Shown here: positions 44,946 through 49,944 of the stretch, piece after piece
Numbering within the stretch: position 1 is the first letter of the stretch
Layout: each line of letters starts with the position of its first letter
DNA from: Macrostomum lignano
Lineage: Eukaryota
DNA: 64,000 nt
Assembly: GCA_002269645.1 (NCBI GenBank)
Contig: NIVC01001604.1
Location: 62,001-126,000, forward strand
Direction of reading: 5' to 3'
Position numbers and translations under genes: made by a program
The notes under the pieces: generated by a model
Seen by the model: only the letters and a program-made list of their open reading frames with translations
What the model was told of the DNA's origin: nothing
Database searches by the model: none

Positions 44946-47900
44946 TCATTGGCCCAAGCTAGCGAGTGGCGGGTCAGCCGCATCCAACAGGACCTCTTGA
45001 AACAGCTGACCAATGTCCAGTTTGGGTAGGCTAAAGTCGGCGTCCTGCTGAACTGCAAAGTTGACCCTTTCCAGTCTCTGCTGCTTGCTGGGCGCTGAAA
45101 TGTGCGAGAGATGTTTGGGCGAATTGAGTATATCTGGACACTACAATAAGCATTCATATCTGACTGGCCTGGCTCACGTCACACTCATCCCCAAGCACAC
45201 CTGGCCTCGCTCACACTCACCCTTAAGCACACCTGGCCTCGCTCATCCATCCCCAAGCACACCTGGCCTCGCTCACACTCATCCCCAAGCACACCTGGCC
45301 TCACACTCATCCATCCCCAAGCACACCTGGCCTCGCTCATCCACCCCAAGCACACCTGGCCTCACACTCATCCATCCCCAAGCACACCTGGCCTCGCTCA
45401 CACTCACCCTTAAGCACACCTGGCCTCGCTCATCCATCCCCAAGCACAGCTGGCCTCGCTCACACTCATCCCCAAGCACACCTGGCCTCACACTCATCCA
45501 TCCCCAAGCACACCTGGCCTCGCTCATCCACCCCAAGCACACCTGGCCTCACACTCATCCATCCCCAAGCACACCTGGCCTCGCTCATCCACCCCAAGCA
45601 CATCTGGCCTCACACTCATCCATCCCCAAGCACACCTGGCCTCGCTCATCCACCCCAAGCACACCTGGCCTCGCTCACACTCATCCCCAAGCACACCTGG
45701 CCTCACACTCATCCATCCCCAAGCACACCTGGCCTCGCTCATCCACCCCAAGCACACCTGGCCTCACACTCATCCATCCCCAAGCACACCTGGCCTCGCT
45801 CATCCACCCCAAGCACACCTGGCCTCGCTCACACTCATCCCCAAGCACACCTGGCCTCGCTCACACTCATCCCCAAGCACACCTGGCCTCGCTCACACTC
45901 ATCCCCAAGCACACCTGGCCTCGCTCACACTCATCCCCAAGCACACCTGGCCTCACACTCATCCATCCCCAAGCACACCTGGCCTCACACTCATCCATCC
46001 CCAAGCACACCTGGCCTCGCTCATCCACCCCAAGCACACCTGGCCTCGCTCATCCATCCCCAAGCACACCTGGCCTCGCTCACACTCATCCCCAAGCACA
46101 CCTGGCCTCACTCATCCATCCCCAAGCACACCTGGCCTCACACTCATCCATCCCCAAGCACACCTGGCCTCGCTCACACTCATCCCCAAGCACACCTGGC
46201 CTCGCTCATCCATCCCCAAGCACACCTGGCCTCACACTCATCCATCCCCAAGCACACCTGGCCTCGCTCACACTCATCCCCAAGCACACCTGGCCTCGCT
46301 CATCCATCCCCAAGCACACCTGGCCTCACACTCATCCATCCCCAAGCACACCTGGCCTCGCTCATCCATCCCCAAGCACACCTGGCCTCGCTCACACTCA
46401 TCCCCAAGCACACCTGGCCTCACTCATCCATCCCCAAGCACACCTGGCCTCGCTCATCCATCCCCAAGCACACCTGGCCTCACACTCATCCATCCCCAAG
46501 CACACCTGGCCTCGCTCATCCATCCCCAAGCACACCTGGCCTCGCTCACACTCATCCCCAAGCACACCTGGCCTCACTCATCCATCCCCAAGCACACCTG
46601 GCCGCACCCACGAAAACCCTGTAAAAGCGAGTCGCTCACGCGGCTGTAGCGGCCTGGCCTCGGCGCGTATCCGCTGACCGCAGGTGGCGCAGGAGTCGCA
46701 GAAGATCAGCTGGGACTCCTTGCTCTGCTGGCCGGTGCTGCAGCAGGTGACGCGCAGGTTGGCGTTCACCCGCTCGTGCGGCGCGCCGCGGGTCAGGTGG
46801 TCGCGCAGCTGCTGCTCGCGCGGCGTCTCCAGCGCGATGATATTCTGCGGATGGCAGCGCTGGGAAACAGGTTTTTCCAGCTTTGATTTAAAGATTCCCC
46901 CAGGAAATTTGTTATTCGAGATGAATCCCGAAGACGTGCGTCTCCGCAAAACTTTCAATACAAAAGTAAACGGAAAAGAGAATAAGTGAAAAAGAACTCA
47001 GTAGTCGGCTTAGGAATGGAGGCGGGCCGGTATCTCTGTCTGATGAAAGTTAGAACAAGAGAATTAGCAGGTGAAAATAGCTAACCCACAAAGTTTAATC
47101 AACAACCTCACCGGTTTGACTTCAATTGGCTTGAGTCGCAGTTCGCAGTTCTGATCCTGGTTGCCATGCGGACTGATGGCAATCTCATAAGAGTCCGGAC
47201 TCTGATCTGAAGAATAATCGATGCAGTCAATAAAATATTGCCAAGAAGCAGTTATTAAACAGAGATAAAAGGCGGGCAAATATCTACCTGACAGAGGCTT
47301 GGTGAAGTAGATGAAAACCTGCTGACCTCCATGGAGGGACAGGTCGACGGGGAAGACGCGGTCGATGCTGATGTTCGCCTCTGAATTGTCGGCAGGTTAT
47401 TGAAGTTGCTGCTCTTATGCACAACAGTATTCAACCGGCTTTTCTCTACAGTACCTGCTCATGCTGCTCTCATACACAACAGCATTCAACCGGCTTGTCT
47501 CTACAGTACCTGCTCATGCTGCTCTCATACACAACAGCATTCAACCGGCTTGTCTCTACAGTACCTGCTCATGCTGCTCTACGATAAAGGTCCATAGATG
47601 TACGATGCTTTACCTTTACCAAAAAAGGTAACTTCTATTACTATCCGTGTGCCGGCAAGACTCTACATACTCAGTTGCACAGTAATATTTGGCCTGCATC
47701 ATTATTTTTTAGGACGCCTGTAGCAGCACTGGTTGGGGATCTCAAACTAACTACGAGTCACCTCAATACCAGCCGACTTACTCTTATTCCTGATTACGTC
47801 CGTGATGACAATGTTTCCAGGAAGCCATTTGTCGTTTCCGTTAAAAGAATAGAATAGCTGAAAGCAGAGGCACAACTCGCCCCAGAACTTCTTCTTCTGC

Positions 47901-49851
47901 TGCTGCTGTTGCTGTTGTTGCAGCTGTTGCTCTGTTAAATCGGGGCGGGATCAAAAAGCAAAAGTCTGTCTGCAACTGCCATCCCGATGAAAACAGCTAC
48001 CCAGGGCCAAGGAGCGTCCCAGAGTCACTTGAGAGTATGAATAAAACAGGAAAGAAGTGACTCGAGACGACTCTAAAACGATGAGATGTCGCGGTACAAG
48101 TCGCCAGAAGTCGTCAGAGTCTCCCCAAGAGTTACTTGAATGAAGCGTTTTATTGTCTGCGACTTGGAAACAACTCTGGGGCGACGGTACATCTCACCGT
48201 CAGGCAGTGAGGGCTCGGGCCACTTACGCACGAATCGCACAGGCCCGCAGCCCAGCATTCAATGCGCGAACAGCAAATAACTGCCGGGGCGGAATTGAAC
48301 CCCGGTAGCTTTGGTGCAGCGTTGCCGCTTCACCCCAAGCCCCAAGTCAGTCCCGCGCTGCTATTTCCAACTCACGCAAGTGTCTCAGGTCGGGGTTGAA
48401 GCCGTTCACTGCTCGAGAATTCAATTCTTCCGCGACGTCGTCGTTGCGGACGCTGACGATGGACAGGCGTTCGAGGCTGCGGCGGCGGGGTGGTGAGGAA
48501 CTGAAGGCCTGCTGAACTGCCTCTGCCAGTGAAATTCTAAGCGTAGACAGACAGACAGACAGACAGATAGACAGATAGACAGACAGACAGACAGACAGAC
48601 AGACAGACAGACAGACAGACAGACAGACAGACAGACAGACGGACAGACAGACAGACAGCAGACAGACAGAGACAGACAGACAGACAGACAGACAGAGAGA
48701 TAGACAGACAGACAGAGAGATAGACAGACACAGACAGACAGACAGACACAGACAGACAGACAGACAGACAGACAGACAGACAGACAGACAGACAGACAGA
48801 CACTAAGACAGACAGACAGACAGACAGACAGACAGACAGACAGACAGACAGACAGACAGACAGACAGACAGACAGACAGACAGACAGACAGACAGACAGA
48901 CAGACAGACAGACGGACAGACAGACAGACAGACGGGCAGACAGACAGACAGCAGACAGACAGAGACAGACAGACAGACAGACAGACAGAGAGATAGACAG
49001 ACAGACAGAGAGATAGACAGACACAGACAGACAGACAGACACAGACAGACAGACAGACAGACAGACAGACAGACAGACAGACAGACAGACAGACAGACAC
49101 TAAGACAGACAGACAGACAGACAGACAGACAGACAGACGGGCAGACAGACAGACAGCAGACAGACAGAGACAGACAGACAGACAGACAGACAGAGAGATA
49201 GACAGACAGACAGAGAGATAGACAGACACAGACAGACAGACAGACACAGACAGACAGACAGACAGACAGACAGACAGACAGACAGACAGACAGACACTAA
49301 GACAGACAGACAGACAGACAGACAGACAGACAGACAGACAGACAGACAGACAGACAGACAGACAGACAGACAGACAGACAGACAGACGGACAGACAGACA
49401 GACAGACGGGCAGACAGACAGACAAACAGACAGACCTGATCTCCATCTTGCCGGACTCAACATGCCGCCGGGTCACCTCTTGCCTCAGTAGGAATGCTCC
49501 GTTTTGGCAGTCGTCGCCGTGCAGCAGAAACGGATGCGGCTCCAGCTCGGGAGTCACCGTGCAGCCGCGTACGCAGACGTAGTGCAGTTCCTCCGAGATG
49601 CCCGCCACCTTCAGGCGGGTGAAGCTCTCGCCCTGCGATCCGGAGTGCCGGCCTTTCAGGATACCCCCAAGTCGATTGTCGGTGACGTCTTTTTTGTAGC
49701 GGAACTGGTGAAACTCGGCCGGCTGAACAGCTATGCTCAGCGTCGGGGGCTGCACCGGTGGCTGAGGAGGAAAGCCAGCCTGTATCATGATCTGTTCCAG
49801 AGGATCATTCTCATTTGCTGCTCCTTGATTTGGCTCTTGAGGATTATCCAT
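44946..49851 (-). CDS. Divergent Rel/NF-kB-family transcription factor (RHD + IPT, short acidic tail, no ankyrin repeats), 7 exons, ~407 aa
   Basis: Exons 49851-49436 (alternative ATG at 49872), 48476-48376, 47931-47782, 47380-47288, 47206-47112, 46859-46640, 45094-44946; phases 2,1,1,1,0,1 all close. Rel landmarks appear in order: [93 protein letters not shown]. Confidence 0.85.
45165..46602 (+). repeat. ~28-32-bp variable minisatellite, last intron of the Rel-like gene
   Basis: Core ccccaagcacacctggcctc with variable spacers. Confidence 0.94.
47445..47580 (+). repeat. 55-bp tandem repeat (~2.5 copies), Rel-like intron 3
   Basis: Unit tacagtacctgctcatgctgctctcatacacaacagcattcaaccggcttgtctc. 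Confidence 0.85.
48545..49435. repeat. (GACA)n microsatellite with repeated variant blocks, Rel-like intron 1
   Basis: The variant block ..gcagacagacagagacag..gagatagacag..cactaagacag recurs about three times. Confidence 0.96.
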
Positions 49852-49944
49852 GCAAGTGAATATGTTCAGCATGGATTAAAAAAAACTTTAAGTACTTTTA
49901 GAATTCGCAATGGCTATAGATTGACTGGGTATTAGGAGCTAACG

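Follow-up and report, generated by a model that had tools for sequence, protein, structure and literature searches.

The locus described here raises the question of whether a flatworm has kept a factor of the Rel/NF-kB type. No NF-kB was found in Monogenea, Trematoda or Cestoda in a 2024 survey (PMC11432056). In a 2026 paper, planarian NF-kB homologues were said to be difficult to recognise, the RHD genes found being all divergent; seven such factors are described in Schmidtea mediterranea, and Macrostomum is not mentioned (PMC13563047). The statement of an earlier note on this DNA, that NF-kB is commonly reported as missing in planarians and schistosomes, therefore holds in part: it agrees with the survey of the three parasitic groups named, whereas S. 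mediterranea has these divergent RHD factors. Toll-like receptors (TLRs) are reported absent in Macrostomum lignano (PMC8609888), and nothing relevant was found in the literature on Macrostomum combined with NF-kB, Rel or RHD. The window, i.e., the whole 64-kb stretch of DNA analysed, is an exact match to M. lignano contig NIVC01001604.1, as expected from the flatworm origin that the earlier note had suggested. That note had proposed for it a hidden gene representing a retained, fast-evolving Rel branch.

The gene, Mlig010152g1, lies on the minus strand, where seven exons from 49872 to 44946 are spliced into an ORF of 409 aa, close to the approximately 407 aa predicted earlier (Table 1). All exons have GT donors and AG acceptors with compatible phases, and the ORF includes the GenBank protein BOX15_Mlig010152g1, identical at each residue, which bears out the proposed seven-exon structure. 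Most of the gene is, as claimed, invisible in an ORF track: exon 1 is the sole exon inside a long ORF (49297..49872), and the six others measure 93-205 nt each. The word hidden cannot be retained, since the gene was already in GenBank, the NIVC gene models being the product of a genome-guided RNA-seq assembly (PMC5730564), and UniProt automatically labels A0A1I8ICY7, a model of this locus that leaves out exon 3, as an RHD protein, and related M. lignano models as "RHD domain-containing protein".

The start codon is uncertain. Met codons are present at 49872, where the 409-aa ORF begins, at 49851 and at 49788, and the annotated transcript-derived ORF starts at residue 9 of the 409-aa product. 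The N-terminal leader (codons 1-40) looks unconstrained, as its dN/dS against the homeologue is 0.93, a value based on 9 substitutions only. Extra in-frame AG acceptors occur upstream in three exons (Table 1) and lead to a 447-aa variant. This variant was set aside because the Pfam RHD_DNA_bind score is 48.3 bits, vs 59.7 bits for the 409-aa set, and because the 409-aa junctions reproduce the GenBank protein exactly.

Table 1. Exons of Mlig010152g1 and intronic repeats, in positions of the window.
Feature	Position	Strand	Length	Content	Basis
Exon 1	49436..49872	-	437 nt	start codon, N-terminal leader, first half of RHD N-terminal domain, loop QFRYKKD	Pfam match begins at aa 45; donor CAG/GTCTGT (slash, exon end)
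Exon 2	48376..48476	-	101 nt	segment equivalent to FQNLGIQCVKK..NNNPF; alternative in-frame acceptor 48536	acceptor 48476 reproduces GenBank protein and lifts Pfam score
Exon 3	47782..47931	-	150 nt	polyQ/Lys insert, LCLCFQ strand, end of RHD N-terminal domain; missing in A0A1I8ICY7	
Exon 4	47288..47380	-	93 nt	linker and initial strands of IPT/TIG dimerisation domain	
Exon 5	47112..47206	-	95 nt	middle part of IPT/TIG domain	
Exon 6	46640..46844	-	205 nt	NIIALETP strand, end of IPT/TIG domain, Cys-rich stretch; alternative in-frame acceptor 46859	
Exon 7	44946..45094	-	149 nt	degenerate NLS position, acidic-hydrophobic tail, TGA 44946-44948; alternative in-frame acceptor 45133	
Intron 1 repeat	48545..49435			(AGAC/GTCT)n microsatellite, nearly whole intron	
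Intron 6 repeat	45179..46603			31/32-bp minisatellite, about 46 copies, fills intron	

The Pfam profile RHD_DNA_bind (PF00554) is matched over its positions 1-167 of 169 with E=4.6e-16, and the 59.7 bits exceed the gathering cut-off of 27 bits; on this ground the resemblance to RHD proteins is, at the level of sequence, far above chance. All Rel landmarks listed in the earlier note were found, in the right order. The profile RHD_dimer (PF16179) gave no match at E<=10 with either the full protein or its C-terminal 180 aa, so that the evidence for the dimerisation domain is the predicted structure and an alignment to c-Rel. The DNA-binding Ig-like domain of the N-terminal part is placed at about aa 44-228 and the IPT/TIG dimerisation domain at about aa 235-341. 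The AF2 model has a pLDDT above 90 over most of residues 31-340 (about 90 for both domains) and, in a Foldseek search against the PDB, matches RelA, c-Rel, p50, p52 and RelB with E values from 1e-19 to 1e-15, with alignments to Rel/NF-kB structures that span about 310-346 columns and both RHD subdomains. NFAT is matched at about 1e-13, approximately six orders of magnitude more weakly than Rel. Against the parts of p65 alone, the model reaches a TM of 0.81 for the N-domain and of 0.69 for the dimerisation domain (1oy3_B). A control AF2 model from a Macrostomum-only alignment gave the same Foldseek ranking, again over both domains, and the best PDB matches of the two models are RelA/c-Rel/p50. 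As modelled, Mlig010152g1 has the two-domain RHD fold, the dimerisation domain included.

Mlig010152g1 belongs to a family of about ten paralogue lineages in M. lignano (at 50% identity the sequences form about 13 clusters, each from M. lignano), which are monophyletic with 100% bootstrap in a neighbour-joining (NJ) tree. The retained, fast-evolving branch of the earlier note is thus divergent and of Rel type, but it is not a lone gene. Many of the paralogues lie in tandem arrays, unlike Mlig010152g1, which is a dispersed singleton with an IF-2 gene upstream and an HGH1-like gene (DUF383/384) downstream. It has a long branch in the NJ tree and is, as far as sequence goes, the most derived member of the family. 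Word-indexed protein searches, whether with Mlig010152g1 or with a family profile built from 15 sequences, gave M. lignano proteins only, a result that is no evidence of absence elsewhere, as the insensitive word index missed canonical Rel proteins that the same profile matches at 1e-20 in the PDB. The 32 matches of an exhaustive phmmer search with the single divergent query Mlig010152g1 contained no flatworm besides M. lignano.

For a residue map, p65 positions were aligned to Mlig010152g1 and its paralogues, using p65 numbering for the DNA-contact positions. In Mlig010152g1, R33 is changed to Q, C38 to K, E39 to D, K123 to N, R124 to D, K221 to P and R246 to P; R35, Y36 and K218 are retained, and the R187 equivalent is Lys. 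The recognition loop reads Q-F-R-Y-K-K-D followed by a 3-aa insertion, vs the canonical R-x-R-Y-x-C-E-G. Among the aligned family members, the change of R33 to Q occurs in Mlig010152g1 and its homeologue only, and the lineage is one of two with the change of E39 to D. The other paralogue sequences aligned have both R33 and R35 (12 of 12), mostly within RFRYxxE (10 of 12), and none of the 12 has the Cys. The NLS position, at the C-terminal RHD boundary, is occupied by PSKQQRLER, vs KRKR/KRxR in the paralogues, and from its residues the NLS looks degraded. Positions kept in the IPT domain include F213 (F), L215 (Y) and the hydrophobic NIIAL strand. Mlig010152g1 may bind DNA poorly, or may depend on a partner for nuclear entry.

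In the interpretation that is very probably correct, Mlig010152g1 is an expressed and selectively maintained gene for a short, ankyrin-free RHD protein of approximately 400 aa, which acts on DNA as a Rel-dimer subunit; its expression is deduced from the RNA-seq-derived annotation on which the model is based (PMC5730564). The protein would form homodimers, or heterodimers with paralogues, pairing through the IPT domain, in which the hydrophobic interface positions are kept, and would act in the nucleus, on DNA. The short acidic-hydrophobic C-terminal tail is a likely cofactor or activation motif. DNA recognition would probably be altered or weaker than in the paralogues, considering the QFRYKKD loop and the loss of several basic DNA-backbone contacts and of the KRKR NLS.

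These losses could also indicate a modulator impaired in DNA binding, which dimerises with paralogous Rel proteins, makes defective half-site contact and has no NLS of its own, and which would titrate the other family members or adjust their action, in the manner of a dominant-negative or specificity subunit. This is rather unlikely, although it would account for the R33 change being confined to Mlig010152g1 and its homeologue while the 12 other paralogue sequences aligned keep R33 and R35, for the change at E39, for the loss of the K123, R124, K221 and R246 equivalents and the replacement of KRKR by KQQR, and for the preserved IPT core positions and continuing purifying selection (dN/dS 0.22-0.25). 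It fits less well with the retention of R35, Y36, K218 and the R187-equivalent Lys, with base contact still being possible for Gln and Asp, and with the conserved acidic-hydrophobic tail, which suggests an activator-type function. More doubtful still is an extension of this reading, by which M. lignano, reported to lack TLRs, would have a private, tandem-expanded Rel network with about ten short members, with Mlig010152g1 as a contact-degraded, NLS-less subunit regulating the others by heterodimerisation. If true, such a subunit would take the place of IkB-type control from within the Rel family, or would confer a new DNA specificity, in a phylum that is usually described as being without NF-kB.

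For the preferred reading, a maintained Rel-dimer subunit acting on DNA, the homeologue on NIVC01000291.1 is informative. Its seven exons, splice sites and synteny (IF-2, DUF383/384) are all kept, its protein scores 57.8 bits with RHD_DNA_bind, and its intron 1 is made up of 2102 nt of the same (AGAC/GTCT)n repeat. In both homeologues the ORFs are intact and 12 of 12 splice sites are kept. The dN/dS between them is 0.27 overall at a dS of 0.17, with 0.22 for the RHD N-terminal domain and 0.25 for the C-terminal half, and Mlig010152g1 is, by this measure, under purifying selection. A decaying duplicate, i.e., a pseudogene or non-functional copy left by recent genome duplication and Rel expansion, would explain the long branch of this most divergent family member, its degraded key motifs and the tag 'partial' on the GenBank model BOX15_Mlig010152g1. 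It is highly improbable in view of the intact ORFs and splice sites, the dN/dS at this dS, the transcript-based model and the confident AF2 prediction of both domains.

The type of RHD protein is indicated by the family profile, which in the PDB matches RelB, p65, c-Rel and Gambif1 at 1e-20 to 1e-15 (59-77 bits), p50/p52 at about 1e-10 (approximately 43 bits) and NFAT at E=0.03 (NFATc1, 17 bits). In blastp, Mlig010152g1 has 23-25% identity with class II Rel proteins, and its comparisons with NFAT1 and NFAT5 are non-significant. The closest proteins outside Macrostomum in sequence searches are Dorsal and Rel. Neither ankyrin repeats nor a glycine-rich region (GRR) was found in the 409-aa ORF, which has no ANK Pfam match, and the earlier assignment to the Rel/Dorsal type is upheld. 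The NJ tree rooted on NFAT places the Macrostomum clade with Rel/NF-kB but leaves class I and class II unseparated (bootstraps 2-31%). By sequence and model, Mlig010152g1 is a very divergent Rel/NF-kB-type factor, closest to class II Rel/Dorsal. The HGH1-like gene is convergent with it, about 670 bp beyond its stop, and separates it from an ankyrin-repeat gene that lies about 6.4 kb away from Mlig010152g1, farther on in its direction and on its strand; the ankyrin-repeat gene carries PRKG1_interact and is therefore MYPT/PPP1R12-like. An NFAT/NFAT5-type or p105/Relish-type protein, for which one might cite the span of PF00554 across every RHD class, the low bootstraps and this ankyrin-repeat gene, is scarcely credible given the profile and blastp values for NFAT, the position of the clade in the NFAT-rooted tree, the stop of the ORF at 44946 and the convergent gene that separates it from the ankyrin repeats.

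M. lignano branched off early among the flatworms and is amenable to transgenesis. A clade of about ten Rel-type genes, apparently under purifying selection, indicates that the Rel lineage persisted and diversified early in the phylum, at its base, and was not lost, and the clade offers a tractable system for Rel function in the reported absence of Toll-like receptors. The advance is an incremental one: GenBank and UniProt had listed the proteins before, automatically labelled as RHD, and that flatworms have divergent RHD factors was put forward in 2026 (PMC13563047).

Among known systems, Mlig010152g1 is matched best, in sequence and in structure, by class II Rel proteins (vertebrate RelA/c-Rel/RelB; insect Dorsal/Dif/Gambif1). 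They have the same DNA-binding Ig-like and IPT/TIG domains without ankyrin repeats, and the order and spacing of motifs are alike (xFRY loop, PHPxxLxGxDC, LxI/VxxV, LCFQ and GGxxxF). They differ in the loop, which is RFRYxCEG in class II Rel and QFRYKKD+VTD in Mlig010152g1, where the redox-sensitive Cys is gone and three residues are inserted. Mlig010152g1 also has, unlike class II Rel, a polyQ/Lys insert and an IPT domain that Pfam RHD_dimer does not recognise, and its tail is of about 60 aa with a degenerate NLS, whereas class II Rel proteins have a long C-terminal activation domain. Class I NF-kB (p105/p100/Relish) and NFAT/NFAT5 share the RHD fold with weaker scores; Mlig010152g1 differs from the former in lacking ankyrin repeats and the glycine-rich region, and from the latter in lacking the RAHYETEG loop. 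The M. lignano paralogues (e.g., Mlig028098, Mlig000125g1/g2, Mlig020664, Mlig011721, Mlig001933, Mlig011617) have 24-31% identity with Mlig010152g1 and are also short (about 340-400 aa). They share with it the loop insertion and the loss of the Cys38 equivalent, found in all, and a most-C-terminal part composed of a basic cluster and an acidic-hydrophobic tail; the KKH and KRKR motifs common among them are KPN and KQQR in Mlig010152g1. The RHD factors of S. mediterranea, compared by description, resemble the Macrostomum family in being highly divergent, with long branches and unclear NF-kB orthology (PMC13563047).

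The seven-exon minus-strand gene at 49872 to 44946 encodes a Rel-homology protein, and the family assignment made from the sequence alone is borne out by profile and predicted structure. The product matches Pfam RHD_DNA_bind over profile positions 1–167 of 169 (59.7 bits, E=4.6e-16, cut-off 27), whereas Pfam RHD_dimer does not match its C-terminal domain; c-Rel and p65 are matched by phmmer in PDB. An AlphaFold2 model from a 36-sequence alignment (mean pLDDT 78.8, above 90 over most of residues 31–340 of the public protein P0001, BOX15_Mlig010152g1) predicts a two-domain Rel-type fold. 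Foldseek ranks RelA, c-Rel, p50, p52 and RelB first in PDB (E 1e-19 to 1e-15, 310–346 aligned columns spanning both subdomains), ahead of NFAT chains (about 1e-13), and TM values are 0.81 to the isolated p65 N-domain and 0.69 to the isolated p65 dimerisation domain. Because this alignment included canonical Rel proteins, the prediction was repeated with a Macrostomum-only alignment; mean pLDDT was slightly lower (71.5), and fold and Foldseek ranking were unchanged. These models, together with an alignment to c-Rel through a 15-residue segment, suggest that the C-terminal domain is an IPT/TIG dimerisation domain.

The single ORF is built from seven open segments, bounded by GT donors and AG acceptors, whose phases are compatible. 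The acceptors at 48476, 46844 and 45094, indicated by P0001, give a 409-aa product that includes all 401 aa of P0001 unaltered, and a 447-aa model using the most upstream AG at these three exons was dropped. The NIVC annotation is derived from genome-guided RNA-seq assembly (StringTie/TACO, TBONE, TransDecoder; PMC5730564), and therefore the P0001 junctions rest on transcript data via the annotation. Most of the gene appeared invisible in the ORF track because the long six-frame ORF (49297..49872) covers exon 1 only and the remaining exons are short (93–205 nt). Nevertheless, "hidden" was overstated, as a protein search returned three Macrostomum lignano proteins, P0001 ("hypothetical protein, partial"), BOX15_Mlig026896g2 and UniProt A0A1I8ICY7, the last labelled "RHD domain-containing protein". 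The P0001 locus on Macrostomum lignano contig NIVC01001604.1 (GCA_002269645.1) is identical to window 36946–57848 in reverse orientation, so the guess of a flatworm genome was right.

Tandem repeats in introns make up 50.5% of the gene span, including an (AGAC)n microsatellite in intron 1, a 55-bp repeat in intron 3 and a 31/32-bp minisatellite of about 46 copies in intron 6. The arrays filling these introns belong to 38 merged TRF arrays covering ~40% of window 1–64000, where many 20–50-bp minisatellites give rise to long but spurious ORFs on both strands. Ordinary animal genes surround the Rel gene; the MYPT/PPP1R12-like one, with ankyrin repeats, has no relation to it. UniProt A0A1I8FHE9 joins IF-2 to the homeologue's first Rel exon, probably through a run-on gene prediction. 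The Abl-family kinase ORF is lengthened by a 15/28-bp repeat, either intronic or exonic.

Coordinates of the Rel gene (409-aa model), its surroundings and the tandem Rel array L003 (NIVC01000103.1:881406-906815; positions within L003)
Feature	Position	Strand	Remark
Exon E1	49872-49436	-	
Exon E2	48476-48376	-	
Exon E3	47931-47782	-	
Exon E4	47380-47288	-	
Exon E5	47206-47112	-	
Exon E6	46844-46640	-	
Exon E7	45094-44946	-	stop TGA at 44946-44948
PolyQ-Lys tract	47860-47925		exon 3
Cys-rich stretch	46640-46720		exon 6, aa about 330-352
Mitochondrial-type IF-2 gene	51128-57165	-	GTP_EFTU, IF-2 domains; directly upstream of Rel gene
HGH1-like gene	42098-44277	+	DUF383/DUF384; convergent with Rel gene
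MYPT/PPP1R12-like gene	36337-38537	-	ankyrin repeats, PRKG1_interact; beyond HGH1-like gene
Abl-family tyrosine kinase exons	59722-63392	-	kinase domain 255 bits, C-terminal F_actin_bind
(GACA)n array	18347-20860		2.5 kb
L003 RHD gene 1	2771-8579		342 aa
L003 RHD gene 2	10001-15410		387 aa
L003 RHD gene 3	16979-20878		340 aa
L003 RHD gene 4	23071-25410		354 aa

Within the superfamily, a profile built from 15 Macrostomum family proteins and run against PDB sequences scores RelB, p65, c-Rel and the Dorsal homologue Gambif1 at 59–77 bits (E 1e-20 to 1e-15), compared with about 43 bits for p50/p52 (E 1e-10) and 17 bits for NFATc1 (E 0.03). The ORF contains neither ankyrin repeats nor a glycine-rich region, for which there is no space before the convergent neighbour; profile scores and ankyrin-free ORF uphold the proposed Rel/Dorsal type. 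An exhaustive phmmer search of 1.84 billion representatives, with P0001 as query, yielded 32 matches; with the ten weakest set aside, those identified from outside M. lignano are thrips Dorsal (4.7e-14), a Saccoglossus Rel-like protein, moth Dorsal, a Glossina RHD protein and two unnamed ENA proteins. Against reference RHD sequences (c-Rel, Dorsal, RelA, p50, NFAT1, NFAT5), pairwise blastp gives 23–25% identity to c-Rel, Dorsal and RelA, a weaker match to p50 and no significant match to NFAT1 or NFAT5. In a neighbour-joining tree with NFAT as the root, the M. lignano RHD proteins all form a single clade (100% bootstrap) next to Rel/NF-kB, but class I and class II are left unseparated.

Read as a single retained gene, the earlier note's Rel branch is overstated. 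A search of representatives, a profile search and two look-ups of clusters show about ten RHD paralogue lineages in M. lignano, which share less than about 40% identity with the window protein. Most comprise two or three copies that are nearly identical, which fits the duplicated DV1 genome (PMC5730564). In L003, four RHD_DNA_bind genes are arranged head to tail within 25 kb, with paralogues of the array on two further contigs, and a second cluster (NIVC01000475.1:59303-82404) has at least two RHD genes side by side (395 and 405 aa), which belong to a different subfamily (Mlig001933g1/g2). In UniRef, three proteins (P0037–P0039) that share a 90% cluster with the RHD protein Mlig028098 carry the name "Inositol-pentakisphosphate 2-kinase", probably a propagated mis-annotation or the result of a fused model. 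Family-wide features are a length of about 340–400 aa, S, T or K in place of p65 Cys38, a 3–5-residue insertion after the recognition-loop Glu, and a basic KRKR cluster at the Rel NLS position followed by a short acidic-hydrophobic tail.

The window gene, a dispersed singleton, has a single homeologue (NIVC01000291.1) that shares its seven exons, splice sites and neighbours. Over 399 codons (Nei-Gojobori), dS is 0.170, dN 0.046 and dN/dS 0.27, with 0.22 in the RHD-N part, 0.25 in the C-terminal half and 0.93, from only 9 substitutions, in the first 40 codons; introns are 72–94% identical and their repeat arrays differ greatly in length. Conserved exons and splice sites, the dN/dS pattern and intron divergence argue for a functional protein whose extreme N-terminus is unconstrained or untranslated. 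The polyQ-Lys tract (15 residues), located in the helical insert region of the RHD N-domain, varies in length: the homeologue's tract has three fewer residues.

In p65 numbering (the RelA sequence used has the expected residue at every site), both homeologues keep R35, Y36 and K218 and carry R33Q, C38K, E39D, K122R, K123N, R124D, R187K, K221P and R246P. Both recognition-loop arginines are kept in 12/12 other aligned paralogue sequences, RFRYxxE in 10 (Glu is Gln in one and Asp in one), and KKH stands at the HRQ position in most of them. At the NLS position the window protein reads SKQQRLER, and its 22-residue C-terminal tail is identical between homeologues.

The window protein is of Rel type with two domains, evolves under purifying selection and comes from a lineage-specific expansion. 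By analogy with established Rel proteins, it would dimerise through its IPT domain and serve as a transcription-factor subunit. Because the recognition loop is derived and basic contacts are lost, it is best read as a subunit whose DNA recognition is probably altered or weakened. A serious alternative, which we consider rather unlikely, is a modulator acting mainly by heterodimerising with RFRYE-type paralogues. TLRs are reported absent in M. lignano (PMC8609888).

The premise that flatworms lack NF-kB holds for Monogenea, Trematoda and Cestoda, with zero proteins in a 2024 survey whose sample did not include free-living flatworms (PMC11432056), but is overstated: a 2026 Development paper describes seven highly divergent, long-branched RHD factors in S. 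mediterranea beside an NFAT5 that is well conserved, and reports that RNAi against the most Relish-like factor was lethal (PMC13563047). Divergent flatworm RHD factors as a general idea are thus already in print. In the literature library searched, no paper connects Macrostomum to NF-kB, Rel or RHD; the gene is therefore listed in databases but still uncharacterised. Two aspects merit further attention: how large the M. lignano Rel family is and how it is arranged in tandem, and how far the DNA contacts of the window protein are degraded. After the IPT domain lies a 13-residue Cys-rich stretch, a possible metal-binding site, that is absent from canonical Rel proteins; several paralogues have related SCxxCG motifs, for example CSHCGC and CTLC.
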